Positions 50,879 through 60,100 of a stretch of DNA of 64,000 nucleotides are shown here, one piece after another. The notes under the pieces were generated by a model that worked only from the letters and a program-made list of their open reading frames with translations, searched no databases and had not been told where the DNA came from. How positions within the stretch are numbered: position 1 is the first letter of the stretch; each line of letters opens with the position of its first letter. The position numbers and the translations under genes were made by a program. This stretch comes from Zygnema circumcarinatum SAG 698-1b (Eukaryota; Plantae; Zygnematophyceae), in the NCBI GenBank assembly GCA_037447605.1, contig CM074809.1, positions 2,904,689 through 2,968,688 on the forward strand. The letters run 5' to 3'.

Positions 50879-51040
50879 GACCAAAACTCTTTATCTCAAC
50901 CCAAATTCTCTATCCCTCTCCTCTCCTCTCCTCTCCCTTCCCCTCCCCTCCCTCGCCTTCCCTCCCTGTACTCCTTCACCTTTCCCTCTCTCCCTCCAGC
51001 GCCCTTCCTTCACCTCCCCCCCCTTTCCATCCGCCCTCCC

Positions 51041-51185
51041 TTTATATCTCCCTCCCTCCCTCCCCAATTCCTCCCTATTCCGCCCGGGGATCTGCCCGCC
51101 GGCCCGCCGGCCCGCCGAGGGACTGAGCAATGTACGGAATGTACGAAATGTACGAATGGTACGAATTATGTACGAATTGTACGAA
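51041..51185 (-). promoter_or_regulatory. Cytochrome b561 core promoter: TATA box plus a six-copy SBP-box binding site array
   Basis: TATAAA on the - strand at 51046-51041. (T/G)GTACG(G/A)A at 51131, 51140, 51149, 51158, 51169 and 51178, reading TTCGTACA/TCCGTACA on the gene strand. Confidence 0.7.
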
Positions 51186-51263
51186 CTAACTGACCGAGTG
51201 CCGGTCAAAGTGCGCGCTGCGCCGCGCTGTAATTCGAAAGTCCGCACTTTTCCCCCCCGAGCA

Positions 51264-51642
51264 GCCACGTGGCGACAAGCTGACCGCATCGGACCGGGGG
51301 CCGTCCAGCGCGCCACGTCAGATGCGACCGGGCGAGATGGCGCCACGCGCATGTGCGGGTCCAGGGAAAGACACGTGGTAAAGTTCTCGTCGATGACGCC
51401 ACGTGGCGAGTGCAGACGGAAGGCGCGTGGGAGATGTGACCCGATCGGACCGGACCAAGTGACCAAGATCCGATTTGTCGGCGCGACTCGCCGGGTGAGA
51501 CCTGGGCGGGCCTTTCTGGCGAGTTGTTGGTGGAATGAGACACGTGGCGGGCTGTGGTTGGGAGAGGCGTCCTGCCCGAAATCGTGGCATCAAACTGTTG
51601 GTACGGCTGGTCAACTATCGGTCAACGACCGTACTGTACGGA
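51264..51642. promoter_or_regulatory. G-box/ABRE cluster plus three further GTAC sites
   Basis: GCCACGTGGC at 51264 and 51398, GCCACGTCA at 51312, ACACGTGG at 51371, GACACGTGGC at 51539, CACGCG at about 51345. GTAC three times in 51601-51642. Confidence 0.55.
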
Positions 51643-51714
51643 AGCGGACGACTAAGAAGATATAAGAAGAATCGGAAGAATCATGCTGAAATTTGAAATT
51701 CGTGCCGCTGTGCT

Positions 51715-51792
51715 GGACATGGGCATGGACATGGACATTGACATGGACATGGGCATGGACATGGACATGGACATGGACATGGACATGGACAT
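51715..51792. repeat. (GGACAT)13 hexamer microsatellite
   Basis: Direct reading with three variant units (GGGCAT twice, TGACAT once). Confidence 0.95.
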
Positions 51793-52894
51793 GGCCCTCC
51801 CACGAAAGAATGATTGAATAGGCTCTTTGTACAAGCAACCAGAATCTGTTGTTCTGACGTTCCATGTTGTTGTTGACAATGGCAAGTTTGGGGAAAGTAC
51901 GTTCCAGCACACACCAGGACATGCACATGGTCCTTCGAAAGGATTCTTTCATGTGGACATGTGGGTATGGTAGAACGTGGAGAATGAATCACAGGGGAAG
52001 CTGTAGCGAGGGTTTGTTGTGGACCAAGGAACATGGAGCTGCCGGGGGGGACCCGGAAGGGGAGGGTGCACATACTATGAAACGCTGGAGATGAAAGAGA
52101 GGAGGGAGGGAGGGAGGAAGGAAAGGAAGGACAAGGGTAGAGCGGAAAGGCTTGGAAGTAGTTGCAAAATTTACACGGCGTCTCTTCTGTGGTCTCTTCA
52201 CAAAATCATCTTTTTCCAAACAAAGGCATCCTGATCTGTCTGCCAGTTCCCACCAAACACAGGTGGGACTGAACACCTCGGTCAGGTTATAATACAAAGG
52301 ACCAGATATCCTGGTTGAATAATCAGTTCACCTGTACGACTCTCCCTGCCTATGAAACGGCTATATCCGTCTGTATAATATGTATAGAAACGAGCATGAG
52401 GAAGGAAAAAGACCACACATTAACCTATCTTGAAATTCAAATGAGAACCACTTCTGCTTTGCTAATGCACCCTGGCTGGTGATCAAGTAAGCACCTTACG
52501 AAGACTTCAAGTAAGGTAACATTGAATGACAAACGGACAGACAAGTGGGAATGCTGCACTGAGTTGGCTTCTAACACGAATTTTGCCGTACGGATATTTG
52601 TAGCTTCCCGCCTCCAAGTTTCTCCTTGCATGGTGTCGGAACGAAAAATATTTGACTGACTCCAACGAATCTCCACTCCTGCTGAAGAGCCCTCAGCTTG
52701 TATGACCGAAGAATGAAGAAATCACTGCATCTTCAATACCTATTGTTAGAGGCATTGTTGTTCTAAAAAGGCATTAACAAGAGCCTTTATGTTCCGGTGT
52801 TTGTTTACACGTGGGCCATTTATTACAAGAGTAAAATTGAGACTAGAATAATTGATCAGCCTCCTAATGGAGTAACCTCGGAGTAACCATCCGT

Positions 52895-55800
52895 TCAAGT
52901 ATAGCGTTCCCCAAGCGATTGCCTGCGGATGATCTGCTGAAACAGCAGCATGGAGGGAGAAGCCTAATCAGAAAAAAAAACAGCTAAGGACTTCAACAAG
53001 CCGAATCCCACAGACACAGAATTGCGAGTTTAGTTCAAAGCACGAAAATAACTGTGATGGTCGCTTTAACTATGCACAGTATCAAATAAAAAGACAGTGA
53101 TAAGGCAAAGACATAGCTAATGCTTCCACACTCAATCCATTCTGGGCCATGACCCATTCAATGGTTCGTGTTGGTGTAGTTAAGCTGCACGTGTCGCAGA
53201 GATACCGACCATTCACTTTTCCCTCTAAACTAGCCACCGCTCTATCACTGAACAGAAAGCAGAACTGACCTCCTCCAACCGCAGGCACTTCTCCTTCACC
53301 TCTTGATGCGCCAATTCGAGCTCTTTGATTCGCGCTAATCCTGCTGCTCTTTCTTCTTGAACCCCCCTCAACAACGTTTCCATGACATCTCCAGATTCGC
53401 GGCGAGAAGAGCCACATGCAGCCTCACTCGCGCCCCCATCTTCCCTGCAGTCTCATAATTTTGGCGTTTCCTTGACGGAATCAGAGGGGACTCTCAGGCA
53501 GACCTCCCACATTGGCGCAGATGTATCCAGAAGTTTCAGATTTTTGTTGCTTTAATCGGCTCAACGAAGTCTTCAAACACAACAATAACTCGATATGAGA
53601 AGGCAAAACTCACCCACGCACAGCGAGACTTTGCAGGTCGTCCAAAAATTCTTCCAACGCAGCGGTTTTCCGGAACAGAACATCGACCAAAACCGGGCCC
53701 ATACGTGCCCAGAAATAATAGAAGACAGCGGCTGTCACAGAGCAGGTAAGGAAGCAACGGCCCACCACCTGCCGGTACGCACGAGTTTGGAGAGTAACCA
53801 ATGAGAGCAGGAAAAGAAAGAGGGAGAGTGTGCCACCTGTCACCACCGTACTGATCCAAGCACCATACCCACACCCACGCAACTGCCAACAGGTGAAAAA
53901 AACAGGGCAAAAAAGGCTGATGGTGAGCAGCATTTTTGTCTCATGTCTCGGTCTAGTGTGCTCAGAGAGCTGCAACCTATTGCATACTTTTCACGCACGT
54001 GCTTTGGAGCATCCTCAGTTTCTTTCTGCATGAGTAAAGCAAGGTCAGGACGTTGGCCCGGTGAGCAGTTTTGCGTACCGAAACTCATTATATCTTGCTA
54101 TGATGTTGCGCAAACGGTAAGCCTGAATCAAGAAAATGAGGAAATACACTGGCACCAATCCCAAAGCGCCTAGAGCCCATAAAATTCCCTGAATAACACA
54201 ATCTCCGCTGTTCGCGTCTGCAGCTATGCATGGCGAATCTTTCGGAGGAGTGATAGAAGGAGGCTCGCATGTCCCCGGCCTACGGAACTCAAATCTGAAA
54301 TAATATTCACAACAAGTTGACACTGTCAGGATGCTACTCTACTAGGAAATAGTATAGCACAGCGCCGGGCCCCGTTTACCTCCTAGCTAACAGGAGTATG
54401 CAGTGAGCATAACCACCATCTGATACTAACAAAGGGCTAACACAACACGCCATTTTTTTGAGGCTGTACGACCGGCGATCAACGGAGAGAATAAAGATCT
54501 GCAGACTTAGTGGGAAAGGGAAGGGGGTGCTCCAGGACACAGCTAAGGGGAAAGTGAAGAATTGCAAACAAGACAAGACAGAGGTGGATAGCTACGAAAA
54601 AGATCAAGGCAGCGGAGGTGAAAACCCAATCAAATTATCTCTTGGAGCTACTCAAATTGCTGAACCAAACAAGAGAAAATTGGCTCATACTTTCTGACTG
54701 AACCTGCCACCCTGAGCTTAAAAACCACAAACATGAACCATGACATGCAAATTCCACAGTTACCATCAAATTTTAACATCATATGCGAGCCCAACCCTAT
54801 CGCTTCTGTCCTTGGACTCACAAAACCCTCAAAGCATCTAAGTGAACAAGCTTGCTGCCGTCCCGGGGCACTCTGCAAACCCAAGCGCAGATTCTTTGGC
54901 ACAAAAGCTCCAAAGTCCCTGATGCCCCGTCACCTGCTTGCAGTCCACACAGTCGCAAACACACAGAACAAAATGGTTGGGAGCAACAGCAGGAAAAGCG
55001 GTCCCACGATCCAATGTATAGGATCCTTCCTGGCGACGAATATGCGATGAATATTGAACAGCCGTGCATTCAGGCAGTTAAGCCAGAGAGCAAAGCCAAA
55101 GCAGAGCTGCAGCCAGAAGGTCCACAGGGGGCAGACAGTCCAAAAGGTTCCCCTGCACAGGGTGATAAAGACACACTGACTATAAACCACATGGATTTAA
55201 ACAGGTCCATCAGTTGTCATCAATAAAGTGAGCATAGTTTACTAATGAGGATTGCATGATGTTTGTGAATACTCGCCGATTTTGACAGCATTCTATTGAT
55301 ATGAAGAGAATACTAATTGGCTGTGATCCACTATTCTCAGTTCTGGCATTCCAAGAACTTTATTTCGAGATGTAAGGCGAGTTGTTAACTCAACGTCTGG
55401 AAGACTGTGGAAATGCTACCTCATGCGTTCTGAAAAGCCTTGATCAGCTAAAACAATTGCCAAAGTTTAGAAGACAAGCAGTAGTGAATCCGAACAATGT
55501 TAATCATGAACACTATTGAGATATGAATGCGTAGCATATATCAACCTGCAATCGTCACGGAAATGAAAAGCTAACGAACCGCGCTGAAGGAAGAACTCAC
55601 CTATCTCGCTCGAAATGACCGTTGACAACAAGAGTAGCAAAGATCCAAACAAATCCTCCTAAGGAACTAAACACAGTGAGGTCCACGCTCTTTGCCTTTA
55701 TAGGCAGATATGACCTGCACAGAAAACAAAGATCATTACTTTAATTGGCAAGCAAGGAAGCCCGGTTCTCTGATTTGCAAAGCGTTCATATCTTGAAATC

Positions 55801-56749
55801 AATCTTGGAACACATATTGATTAGATGTGCCGCACATGGCATCGACCTCCCTTAGTCAACTATTACCAGCTACAGCGCAGCCTAATTCGTCAGCTATGAA
55901 TATCTAAATCTACAGTGCCGCAGCCAAAGAGCCTAGCCTTTGAAACCAGTTCCTGGCCTAACTGCTCATAACCATTGTTCCCTACTAAAAGTCACAGTGA
56001 AATTACCCAAGATAATGCGAATGGTAGACCCAAGCAAGAGGACGGAACGAAGCTAGTCATCCACATGTCCCGCGGGTCCCAAGACCCATCTCAAAAAACC
56101 AAGCCCACTCTTCAATCCCCAATATGCCATTCTTTGGAAAATGGCCAGGAAAATCTGCCATTCCCTCATTGCTTCAGAAATTTGTATCCTCCTGAACGGA
56201 CTTCAAAACTTGACCCTTAAAGTTTTTTATCAATTGTCATCAACAGCTTCACAAACGTTTGAACCGAGCTTTGTCTCAACACCACATATCAGATCACACA
56301 TCTCTCGTTTACATTATAAACACAAGCTACACCCTTTGTCCCAATTTTCCACACTGTCATCTGATCAAGGCATCATCATTTCGTGCAAAACCCTCTAAAT
56401 CTGACCTTGATGGAGGAACCCAGCCGAGTCTTCCCCAGATACTTCTATTGCGCACCCTCCATAAAAGCTAAAGTCATCCAAAACTCTTGCTGCGACTAAT
56501 GTGGTCCTTTGCTTCAAGGTCAAACTTTAAAATTCGACCATTGCATTCTAACTCTTACAGTTAGCATTGTAAAGTGCTGCGGAAGATTTTTTTTATAAGT
56601 CATAAGAAGTAAAGGCCCCACCTGTTCCAGAGAATGAGGACGTTTCCCGCAATAAAAGGAATCATGGCAACACCAATCAAGGCCGTCATCACGATATCCA
56701 AAGCATGGCCTGGAGGCTGAGAAATTTCGCAATCTCCCCTCGGCTCCAT
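52895..56749 (-). CDS. Orphan seven-transmembrane protein related to the RGS1 7TM and class C (GABA-B-like) GPCR domains, with a C-terminal coiled coil, about 387 aa
   Basis: Exons: 56749-56622, 55714-55601, 55152-54934, 54294-54075, 53882-53614, 53444-53270, 52933-52895 (1164 nt). The exon 4 donor is non-canonical and the last exon is tentative. Seven hydrophobic segments; motifs WNRSYLPIKAKS, CPLWTFWLQLCFGF, ARLFNIHRIFV, RNIIARYNEFRYL. Confidence 0.82.
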
Positions 56750-57174
56750 GCCAGCGGGCTCATCCAACCTAAAAAAGTGAAACATGAACCGTTTATTCAC
56801 TGGGAATGCACACCATCCCTCTCACAGACCAGCCCTGCGTTATATATTCCCCCTGTTGGGCCCGAAAAGAGCCTCTCATTGCCTCGAACTGACTCATACT
56901 GCACCGTATTTCCTCTCCTTGCAAGAGAGGTTAGCGACGCCATCAATCGTGCAGGTCGTGCAGAAAGCATACCACCTTCAAAGGACGCCTGGGACGCTGG
57001 CGCTCACATGCCAGCGGACGATTTCTGTGGTGGTAAAAGTCCCTGGGGACGCAGTGGATAAGTTTCGTTCTTGCAAACAAGGGAGGGGGACAAGCAGTAG
57101 TTGCTGCTATTGTCGTCTCGAGAGGGCGGTGAAGCCAAGCCCTCAGAGGGGAAGAGCATTCTTATTGAGCTTCT

Positions 57175-60100
57175 ATGGACGGCATTCTCCTGCATCACTC
57201 AGCGGCAGGAGCTTGCGTGCGGAGGGGATTGCATGAGACCTATCGCCGGACCCTCCTTCAAAAGCACGATGTGGGCTTAATGGCGTCAGAACAGGGTGTC
57301 CCTTTCTCTTCTCACAGGAGTGACTGGGTCGGAGTATCTTGTCAACTGAGTTCACCCCGTCGCCCTTGCGAAAGCTCTGCTGGATACCGTTCCCATCGTT
57401 TTTTAGGCTTTAAGAGTGCCTATCGAATTTTTAAGCGTTTTAGTAATGCTGGCGCTCGTAGTACACCTGTTGTCTCATCCTCCTCAGATAGAGGTGAAGG
57501 AGAGAAATCTAGCGAGCAAGACAACCCTGAGTCCCCTGCAAATCAAGACGACAAGCGTTCTCTTCAAGTCCTGGATGAGGATCAGCCACAAATTCCAAGA
57601 AACATTCAGAGCACGACTGATTTTCTGCGACCGTGGCCTGTTCCTTGGGGATTGAAGGAAACATCTCTCGGCATGATTCTTTGGATTGTAAGGTGTGCTC
57701 GTTAACTGTCTAGAAGTGAAAAATTACAGACTAACAAAAATCACAAGCTCCGGATTCTGATCAATCCGCTGCATTTTTTGCGGAAAGCAACTTTTGTCCC
57801 TATCGTACCGGTAGATTGTGCCGATTTTTAGCAAGAAGTTGATGCCGGGGGCTTGATTACCTGCGGACCGAAATGAACATTTGTCCACGCTTAACGCTAA
57901 GATGGGACGTACATTGATTTTGGAAAGGCTACGTTAAAATGCTACCCACAATTCTATCCCAGTCACAAAAAGTGCATATCTATGTTATGACAAATTCACA
58001 GGGCCACGAAAATGATGACAGTGATGGCAAACAAATCTTCGTGCAGTCGCTCCATCCTGTCTCTCATTCGTTTGTGCCCACGTATCGCTGAGCAGTCCAG
58101 CAGCTCAATCATGAAATGTTGTTCAAAAAGCAATCGCGACGGCAAAGGCGACCACTGAATTATTCGAACCATCCACCACTGATGGGTAGGAGCAGTGACA
58201 TATAACGTGGCCTAATTCCTATTTGCAGTCGTTCGCTAGTAGTTGAAATTCCTGCATCCACATGTACTGAGACTTGTTTCATGGTAAAGTGCTCAAAATC
58301 CAGTGCTTAGATCATGAGCAGAATATGCATTTGTTGATTACCATCTTTTTGTTTGTTGCAGTGTACCAATGTTGGTTGTCCGCTCTGGTTGACAGCTTCA
58401 TTGGGAGTGGATTGGTGGTCCAACTATTGGCGTACGCAGCCGGATGGACTCCCTGGCGCAGTGGCGACCAAGACCAGCAGGCTCTGTTTTTGCTGCTCAA
58501 TCAAGCAGTACGAACAGCCCTGGGAATTGGAGTTGTTTGGGCAGTAACGAGACCATATGAGCCACTCAATGCAGATTTTTTCTCCTTTGGTGCGTTGTCA
58601 AGGCCGTGTTGTTGCAAGTTTTTTGTTGATAGGGTGTAAGCATGAGCTCGCAAGCAGTTTTCTGTGTCAAGAGCAAGAAGTTGTGAATGATGGAGATTGC
58701 AAAGGCGATGTTTTGGCATATTTTAACTGATCTCATCCGATTTTTTTTGGTTAAATGCAGATTTCAAAAAGCCGTTCAGTTTGGAACGAGGTTGGCTGCT
58801 GTGGGCCGGTGTCGGCTTTTTGAGTGCATGTGTTCTCGTGGAGCTTTCTTCTCTGGCGCAAACGTCACTTCAAGGCGTGGAGCCTCCTCGAGATGTGAGT
58901 GTCCCTGGTGGGAAGTATAGTTGAATTGACTGCTTCTACGCTGCTTTGTTTACACGCTTTTAGTTATGTTCTGGTTACCGTTGATATGCATTTCATAGTA
59001 CCCGGAAGGCATGTGTGTTCAGACATAAGATTACTAGGCACGAGCAGACAGTTTGCCATTCAGCAATCACCAAATATACACCGACATCTTGTCAACAGCA
59101 GGTGAAAGTGATGTAGGTGAATGAAGACATGGTTTGCTGGACCTTTCTTCATGGTGCGAATTGAAACTTGGCAATCAAACTAGAAGCAGGGGTAGACTGC
59201 ATAATGCCTGCTCTGACGTTTGATTGATGCTGTAAAATTTTGTGCTGCAGGAGGGTGATGCGCTGTTACAGGTGTTGCCTATCATTGCGGCATCTCCTTT
59301 CAGCACAGGATCGCTCATCTTGGTTGCTGGGGTGTTTGCACCGTTTTTGGAGGAAACAATTTTTCGTGGTTTCCTCATGACTTCGTTGACAAAATGGTAA
59401 TACATGAGATCCAACATTATTTCTTCCTTACAGCACCCAGAAAGCAATGCCTTGCGAGTTAGCGTGTCTGTCAACCACCCTTAAAGACTGGAACTTCCAC
59501 TTGCAGGATGCCACTACCCTTGGCGGCTCTTCTCAGTGCAGGAGCCTTTGCAGGGGCTCATCTGACACCGAGCGAGTTTCCAAAGTTAACTGCCTTAGGT
59601 AAGTTTTGTTGCAGTACTTTCTACTGTTCTCACCCTGCCACCAGTCCCAGTTGCTTTTGGCATCTTTCCCCTTGGTGTCTGATTGCGTCATAACATTTCC
59701 CATTTGCACCAGAGCATTCCTCACTACTTTTGCTCACAAATATTTGGAAGGCATCTTATGCACACTCCAGTTAGCTTGCACACAACATCTACTGCAGTAG
59801 GGCTGCGCAGTCGATATGTCTATTGTTTTTTTGGACCTGTTATTGTCGACAACGATACAGACATGGGTCATTTATGTACATTTAGTCCAGCCTTCTGTAC
59901 TCATCAGAAGGGTTTTTTGTATGTTATGGAGGAATTGCTCAACAGGTCTGGTGCTTGGTTTGACATATGGGAAGACGAGGAACTTGCTGGCTCCGATGCT
60001 TATCCACTCATTGTGGAACTCTGGGATCATTATTCTCCTTACGCTCCTACGGGTATGTGCAGCCTCCTTTGATTATTAGTCTTTTCTCAGTGATGAAGAC

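Follow-up and report, generated by a model that had tools for sequence, protein, structure and literature searches.

The window analysed here comprises 64,000 nucleotides (nt) of contig CM074809.1 (assembly GCA_037447605.1, positions 2,904,689 to 2,968,688 of the forward strand) from the alga Zygnema circumcarinatum SAG 698-1b; positions given below are those of the window. [quoted passage not shown] The RNA, homology and fold data presented below make it almost certain that this is an expressed, seven-exon gene encoding a 376-amino acid (aa) class-C-type 7TM protein without a Venus-flytrap domain, in which the seven helices are followed by a helix-8-like segment and a conserved coiled coil of approximately 40 residues. 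With the same near certainty, it is the Zygnema orthologue of an unstudied family that extends from Klebsormidium to conifers and whose members share homology with the membrane part of 7TM-RGS (regulator of G-protein signaling) proteins but have no RGS box.

Gene structure and transcripts

The exon boundaries are based on Logan RNA contigs from four runs of the source organism, aligned to positions 51300-57100. Joints in these contigs, recovered from several runs, delimit six introns, all of which are canonical GT..AG on the minus strand (the skipped segments start with CT and finish with AC on the plus strand). Introns 1 to 5 are in phase 2, and intron 6 is in phase 0. The spliced coding sequence is 1131 nt in length and specifies 376 aa. 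The start at 56749 and the stop at 52895 that were given in the sequence-only reading are exact in this RNA-supported model, and the seven-exon structure is confirmed by joints in four runs, RNA being one of the checks which that reading had proposed. Its junction between exons 4 and 5 (...NEFRYL...) is incorrect: the RNA gives ...YNEFR/TVVTGG..., with a CG/GT donor at 54079 and an acceptor at 53850. Two other candidates for this junction, namely a GC donor that would follow ...RY and an acceptor that would yield ...R/LFCPVFF, were ruled out by the RNA joints.

An in-frame upstream ATG at 56785 would add 12 aa to the protein, and there are six further ATGs in the 5' untranslated region (UTR); the ATG at 56749, taken here as the start, has the better context (G at -3 and G at +4). 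The upstream open reading frames (ORFs) of the 5' UTR are 7 to 57 codons in length and may reflect translational control or leaky scanning.

The last intron has three acceptors (52724, 52933 and 52936). Use of 52933, which forms a NAGNAG pair with 52936, drops a single Gln and was observed in one run. Use of 52724 (joint 52724/53270, in run X3 only) places a TGA immediately after ...LRLEE and removes the last 13 aa. These 13 residues include an RRQS site of basophilic-kinase-like type that is partly conserved in homologues (RRQTS in Riccia, PRGS in Marchantia and KPRS in Diphasiastrum).

It is so improbable that the gene is an artefact (a mis-assembled model, a pseudogene or a set of chance hydrophobic ORFs) that this explanation can be set aside. 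Intron-retaining contigs do occur at the locus, at lower depth, and the many upstream ATGs in the 5' UTR would also fit an artefact. However, each of the six GT-AG junctions is present in several runs, the frame is open over all 376 codons, every invariant residue of the family is present in the Zygnema protein, and the same architecture recurs in orthologues across approximately the whole streptophyte tree, with BLASTP E values down to 4e-124. Together with the gene tree and the shared intron positions described below, these data refute the artefact explanation.

Table 1. Coordinates of the gene and its parts within the window (TM, transmembrane helix; ICL and ECL, intracellular and extracellular loop; UTR, untranslated region).
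Feature	Position	Strand	Basis
Transcription unit (ends approximate)	52135..56989	-	Contigs to 56989 (5') and 52135-52176 (3'); depth zero at 51882-52075
5' UTR, seven upstream ATGs	56750..56989	-	Contigs to 56989
Exon 1: aa 1-42, short N-terminus and TM1	56622..56749	-	Joint 55712/56620, cut +2, 4 runs
Exon 2: aa 43-80, ICL1 (PIKAKS), TM2, start of ECL1	55601..55714	-	Joints in 4 runs
Exon 3: aa 81-153, TM3 (C88, R111), ICL2, TM4	54934..55152	-	RNA joints
Exon 4: aa 154-225, ECL2 (C186), TM5, ICL3 (NEFR, E224)	54079..54294	-	Joints 54294/54934 and 53850/54079, 4 runs
Exon 5: aa 226-304, TM6, TM7 (GRCF, FWARMG), helix-8-like segment	53614..53850	-	RNA joints
Exon 6: aa 305-363, linker and most of the coiled coil (53270-53383)	53270..53444	-	Joints, heptad scores
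Exon 7, coding part: last 13 aa QIIRRQSLGERYT and TGA stop	52895..52936	-	Joint 52936/53270, 3 runs
3' UTR with alternative acceptor 52724	52135..52894	-	RNA contigs
7TM domain, aa 16-285, introns included	53673..56704	-	Helix limits taken by alignment from the AlphaFold model of P0001, the closest homologue

Organization of the protein

The seven hydrophobic segments of the 376-aa protein are preceded by an acidic N-terminus of approximately 15 aa (27 aa if the upstream ATG is used), and no Venus-flytrap or cysteine-rich ligand-binding domain is found in this short stretch before TM1. With helix limits taken from the model of the closest homologue, ICL1, ICL2 and ICL3 are all basic (net charges of +3, +1 and +2, respectively), and ECL2 is Pro-rich and 41 aa in length. 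TM7 is followed by the helix-8-like segment, an 18-aa linker and the heptad segment.

One Cys in TM3 (C88) and one in ECL2 (C186) are invariant in 31 homologues and align with two cysteines of GABA-B1 in a profile alignment. The sequence-only reading had picked out both this cysteine pair and the combination of seven TM segments with a short N-terminus, and both descriptions hold. In addition, R111 is paired with the Lys of GABA-B1 FTKIW, and the Glu of NEFR (E224) with the NDHR Asp; each of these two positions is at least 90% conserved in the family alignment. R111 and E224 thereby fall at the class C ionic-lock positions 3.50 (basic) and 6.35 (acidic). Conservation across the family is 0.74-0.77 in TM2, TM3, TM6 and TM7, 0.71 in ICL1 and 0.68 in ICL3, and is low in the N-terminus (0.27) and ECL2 (0.28).

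Coiled-coil tail

The heptad segment spans residues 326-367 (approximately 42 residues). Leu, Ile, Val or Met occupies 67% of its a and d positions, and 75% of the e and g positions are charged or Gln (E, K, R, D, Q). The hydrophobic 3-4 spacing is kept over 36 columns in 18 plant sequences from both subfamilies described below, and three positions are hydrophobic in 100% of these sequences despite low overall identity, so that the heptad tail first recognized by eye is borne out in homologues. The only Pfam matches of the tail are weak, sub-threshold and all of coiled-coil type (ZapB, bZIP, ATG16 and Rab11-FIP3); the exon 6 translation has no Pfam match, and the 13 aa of exon 7 are too few for a scan.

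No RGS exon was found downstream of the tail, in agreement with the sequence-only reading. Transcripts are unspliced from 52936 to their end at approximately 52135, none of them runs into a further exon after 52936, and the RNA contigs contain no RGS exon. From the 3' end to the neighbouring gene, all ORFs are either short or of low complexity, with nothing RGS-like by eye.

Family distribution and phylogeny

With exon 3 (TM3 to TM4) as the query, an exhaustive HMMER search yielded 26 representatives, most of which are 300-415 aa in length and have the match at the same position. A first profile search was swamped by low-complexity tails (8000 candidates, 13 hits), and an alignment restricted to the 7TM domain did better. 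In a BLASTP search with the full model, the best homologue was P0001, from a EukProt transcriptome (53% identity over 354 aligned aa, E 4e-124). Klebsormidium nitens KFL_001160190 is 40% identical over 410 aligned aa (E 1e-97), the proteins of Riccia, Diphasiastrum, Psilotum and Marchantia are 39-47% identical, and those of Selaginella are weaker matches (36-37%). All of these are full-length homologues. Homologue searches also brought up members in Sphagnum, Calypogeia, Ceratopteris, Adiantum, Cryptomeria, Picea and Taxus. The family spans Klebsormidium, Sphagnum, liverworts, lycophytes, ferns and conifers, and its Marchantia member is Mp1g05640. No angiosperm member was found in four protein searches, three of which rely on shared words; this distribution suggests that the family was lost in angiosperms.

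Members of the family are present in databases as 'hypothetical protein' or as 'G-protein coupled receptors family 3 (or 2) profile domain-containing protein'. RefSeq calls the Cryptomeria japonica orthologues XP_057866107-112 'regulator of G-protein signaling 1 isoform X1-X5' (P0041, P0043-P0045 and P0005). The longest of these isoforms, X1 and X2, have no Pfam match at E<0.001, and X4 matches 7tm_3 only. The RGS1 name, given to proteins without an RGS domain, seems to be a misnomer inherited from similarity in the 7TM part, and we flag it here as an error in the public annotation. We found no paper on the family, nor on the Marchantia locus, in the class C and GPCR literature for bryophytes, streptophytes and Klebsormidium. 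The candidate receptor of the sequence-only reading is undescribed to this extent; the protein is no orphan, and its family is not categorically new and is visible in databases under automatic or misleading names.

The gene tree of the subfamily that includes the Zygnema gene follows the species tree: Klebsormidium branches first and is followed by an unresolved group consisting of Sphagnum, the Zygnema gene with P0001, liverworts and vascular plants. A second land-plant subfamily, represented by Riccia sorocarpa, Diphasiastrum, Psilotum and one Logan contig (P0017, P0015, P0026 and P0024), is faster-evolving, has the same layout of 7TM domain and coiled coil, and is sister to the first. Because of this sister position, either the duplication is older than the Klebsormidium split or the second subfamily is a divergent offshoot. 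Gene structure is also shared: two phase-2 introns, one after TM4 and one directly after NEFR, lie at identical alignment columns in the Zygnema, Marchantia and Klebsormidium genes, and the phase series of the last four Zygnema introns (2, 2, 2, 0) is that of the four Marchantia introns.

Short 7tm_3 proteins also occur outside plants, in Capsaspora, Anaeramoeba and Palpitomonas. Those of Capsaspora and Anaeramoeba, which have no flytrap, resemble the Zygnema protein in size (approximately 350 aa) and in their short N-termini, but are only 22-29% identical to it and have no conserved heptad tail.

Two further groups of matches were observed. P0014 (1044 aa) contains 17 tandem matches of approximately 58 aa to the TM3-TM4 exon and could be either a repeat protein or an artefact of assembly. 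The P0012 cluster consists of 31 members from environmental assemblies, on metagenome contigs of up to 207 kb, with fragments of 171-259 aa that are approximately 40% identical to the N-terminal half of the Zygnema protein. One of these fragments bears the annotation of an ArnT-like glycosyltransferase; the fragments probably represent exons from relatives among uncultured eukaryotes.

Relation to 7TM-RGS proteins

Three distant relatives, from the protists Ancoracysta twista (P0016) and Muranothrix gubernata (P0025) and from a Logan contig (P0011), have a homologous 7TM domain followed by an RGS box at the position of the coiled coil. Their 7TM domains are 28-31% identical to the Zygnema protein (E 1e-28 to 1e-40) and have the same invariant residues, and all three fall outside the plant clade in the tree. 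P0011 (747 aa) also carries leucine-rich repeats (LRRs), giving it a 7TM-RGS-LRR architecture. In contrast, no RGS box (PF00615) was detected in any plant orthologue that was Pfam-scanned, the Cryptomeria 'RGS1' entries included.

AtRGS1 (UniProt Q8H1F2) is, like the Zygnema protein, a streptophyte protein with a short N-terminus and a class-C-like bundle, and it is the best Swiss-Prot fold match (see below). It differs in having an RGS box where the Zygnema protein has a coiled coil, and the two are only 18% identical. Published work has already reported a class C likeness of the AtRGS1 bundle (PMC11580166; bioRxiv 10.1101/2025.09.10.672744), with class C as its closest resemblance (PMC11580166); what appears to be new, as we found no description of them, are its RGS-less, coiled-coil-tailed streptophyte relatives. 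The distributions of the two families are approximately the reverse of one another: the Zygnema family is present in bryophytes, which are reported to be without 7TM-RGS (PMC3386157 Table 1, PMC3718340, PMC12017998), and was not found in angiosperms.

These comparisons bear on the possibility that the protein is a heterodimer partner of RGS1, as the sequence-only reading had suggested, or a decoy, namely an RGS-less paralogue that heterodimerises with 7TM-RGS and controls its trafficking, endocytosis or GTPase-activating protein (GAP) activity. The AtRGS1 fold match and the RefSeq name of the Cryptomeria orthologues would fit such a role, and GABA-B subunits pair via their C-terminal coiled coils, the family profile aligning into that of GABA-B1. 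The family also co-occurs with 7TM-RGS in Selaginella and gymnosperms (PMC3718340). However, liverworts and Sphagnum keep the family although bryophytes are reported to be without 7TM-RGS, and an obligate RGS1 partnership is unlikely because liverworts, reportedly without RGS1, retain the protein. Most angiosperms, conversely, keep RGS1 and yet have no family member that we could find, and identity to AtRGS1 is 18% as opposed to 31% to a protist 7TM-RGS. Moreover, AtRGS1 is not known to have a matching coiled coil. We therefore regard a role as RGS1 partner or decoy as very unlikely.

Similarity to class C receptors

Exon 3 alone weakly matches the Pfam family PF00003 (7tm_3) at positions 79-138 with an E value of 0.015 and 15.4 bits, the gathering score being 33.5; with the same query, 7tm_3 is present in 42 of the 100 nearest ESM Atlas clusters. 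Seven family members score above 33.5 bits: P0010 (53.6), Klebsormidium (46.5), Ceratopteris (43.9), Psilotum (41.7), Calypogeia (39.6), Diphasiastrum (36.7) and one further member (40.4). When a profile of 31 family sequences was compared with PDB sequences, GABA-B1 ranked first (E 8e-6), in an alignment that spans TM1 through TM7 into the GABA-B1 coiled coil and that has the ICL1-TM2 motif in register. The three motif pairings made by eye in the sequence-only reading fall at the same positions in this HMMER alignment.

P0001 was used as a proxy for whole-protein Pfam, fold and atlas comparisons, and its fold was modelled with the family alignment. The AlphaFold model of P0001 (pLDDT 84, pTM 0.76) shows seven helices together with a hairpin in ECL2 and a terminal helix of 58 residues. 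The top 50 Foldseek matches in the PDB are all class C (GABA-B, GPR156, mGlu, CaSR and GPR158), with VIA-align Z scores of 22-24.6 and root-mean-square deviations of 3-5 A over approximately 250-265 residues. Among the Swiss-Prot models of AFDB, the first match is AtRGS1 residues 9-275 (E 1.9e-8, 18% identity), followed by GABA-B1, GPR156 and GPR158; AFDB clusters and ESM Atlas agree with the class C fold matches. The class C, GABA-B-type assignment, for which the sequence-only reading had suggested a structural comparison of this kind, is thus upheld by orthologues that pass the 7tm_3 threshold, by GABA-B1 as the best PDB sequence and by the class C folds.

The GABA-B subunits GB1/GB2 are the best solved-structure match both by profile (E 8e-6) and by fold (Z 24.6). 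They share with the Zygnema protein the cysteines of TM3 and ECL2, a basic residue at 3.50 and an acidic one at 6.35, ICL1 and ICL3 motifs in register and a cytosolic coiled coil after TM7 at similar spacing. In contrast to them, the Zygnema protein has no Venus-flytrap domain and no aligned TM7 PK motif, and identity is 11-15%; the likeness of the coiled coils may be convergent. The orphan receptor GPR156, a top fold match (Z approximately 23), also has a class C bundle with only a short N-terminus and no flytrap, which shows that such a domain is not universal in class C, and the orphans GPR158 and GPR179 have class C bundles without a flytrap ligand-binding domain. These, however, are animal proteins with long disordered tails and no sequence-level orthology to the Zygnema protein, and GPR158 differs further in its large extracellular domain. 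A coiled coil in the cytoplasmic part of GPR158 recruits RGS7 in trans (PMC8611064). The Grl proteins of Dictyostelium have a 7tm_3 bundle and are among the fold matches, but have large extracellular domains and no conserved heptad tail. Arabidopsis '7TM3', from the paper on 7TM1-7TM5, was considered as a 7tm_3 relative and rejected, as this is the name of an unrelated LUSTR/GPR107-family gene.

Proposed function

The protein is predicted to be oriented N-out, C-in, and its bundle would be stabilised by a putative TM3-ECL2 disulfide and by the R111/E224 pair. By analogy, the cytosolic coiled coil probably serves either to form a dimer, as in GABA-B, or as a docking helix, as in GPR158 (plants are not known to have R7-type RGS proteins). 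The conserved TM core and the ICL1/ICL3 face may engage a conserved cytosolic partner. Given how short and variable the N-terminus and the extracellular loops are, a ligand, if there is one, would bind inside the helix bundle. As the cytosolic partner we tentatively propose the G-protein machinery (Galpha/XLG, Gbeta-gamma or a regulator recruited in trans), an assignment that falls somewhat short of probable. It is the most plausible candidate because every relative in which a further domain can be recognised has an RGS box, and because the closest folds among solved structures either couple to G proteins or, as with GPR158, recruit RGS via a coiled coil. Identity and mechanism taken together, we hold this to be the best overall explanation of the data with moderate confidence.

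Several points weigh against it. Conservation of ICL2, a loop that matters for class C G-protein coupling, is 0.42. P0001 (the closest homologue), Marchantia and Cryptomeria are among the members under the 7tm_3 threshold, and the class C assignment of the Zygnema protein itself derives from exon 3 (E 0.015) and from orthology. No conserved counterpart of the class C TM7 FxPKxY motif is seen in the GABA-B1 profile alignment, and the likeness of the tail to the GABA-B1 coil may be compositional. Plant Galpha is self-activating (PMC3386157), so that a receptor of the guanine-nucleotide exchange factor type is not obviously needed. Finally, plant GPCRs are still contentious, and earlier candidates were not established as receptors (PMC11195488).

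A role unconnected with G proteins is the other explanation to be weighed. The protein would then be, for instance, an endomembrane adaptor for cargo or trafficking, a sensor of lipids or sterols, or a protein resembling a transporter, with a coil that binds tethering or cytoskeletal partners. Plant 7TM proteins first called GPCR-like do act in trafficking, as is the case for LUSTR 7TM1/7TM5 at the Golgi and trans-Golgi network (bioRxiv 10.1101/2020.10.20.345868), and the lack of an extracellular domain, the exclusively coiled-coil-type character of the weak Pfam matches in the tail, and the apparent absence of the family from angiosperms, which have full G-protein sets, are all compatible with this. 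On the other hand, an RGS box is present in each of the nearest relatives that have a further recognisable domain, and this links the ancestral bundle to Galpha; there is conservation at the ionic-lock positions and in the cytosolic loops; and the top folds are all G-protein-coupled or RGS-recruiting class C receptors. We consider a function outside G-protein signaling rather unlikely.

The most far-reaching form of the G-protein proposal is that the family constitutes a true streptophyte class C receptor system, in which a flytrap-less coiled-coil dimer directly regulates G proteins (as an exchange factor, an inhibitor, or through a GAP recruited in trans), replaces 7TM-RGS in lineages such as liverworts, and was lost in the angiosperm stem. 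This is speculative and, in our estimation, unlikely. If true, loss in the angiosperm stem would explain the verdict, centred on Arabidopsis and rice, that plants have no canonical GPCR.

In the model current in the field, self-activating Galpha is restrained by 7TM-RGS (PMC3386157). For bryophytes, which possess Galpha but not RGS1, this model offers no known 7TM regulator. The Zygnema gene shows that the class-C-like bundle has a second conserved lineage in streptophytes, with a coiled coil in place of the RGS box. This family is present both in RGS-less lineages and in tractable models (Marchantia, with Mp1g05640, Ceratopteris and Selaginella) and provides the plant GPCR dispute with a testable candidate.

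Flanking sequence

There is no Rfam match within 51000-57200. A hexanucleotide-type simple repeat lies at 51690-51880, between the 3' end of the gene and the neighbouring gene, and its frames read HVHVHV, MSMSMS and CPCPCP. The segment has a very high RNA contig depth and is flanked by loose contig ends, and it is probably a repeat common to many transcripts and not an exon.

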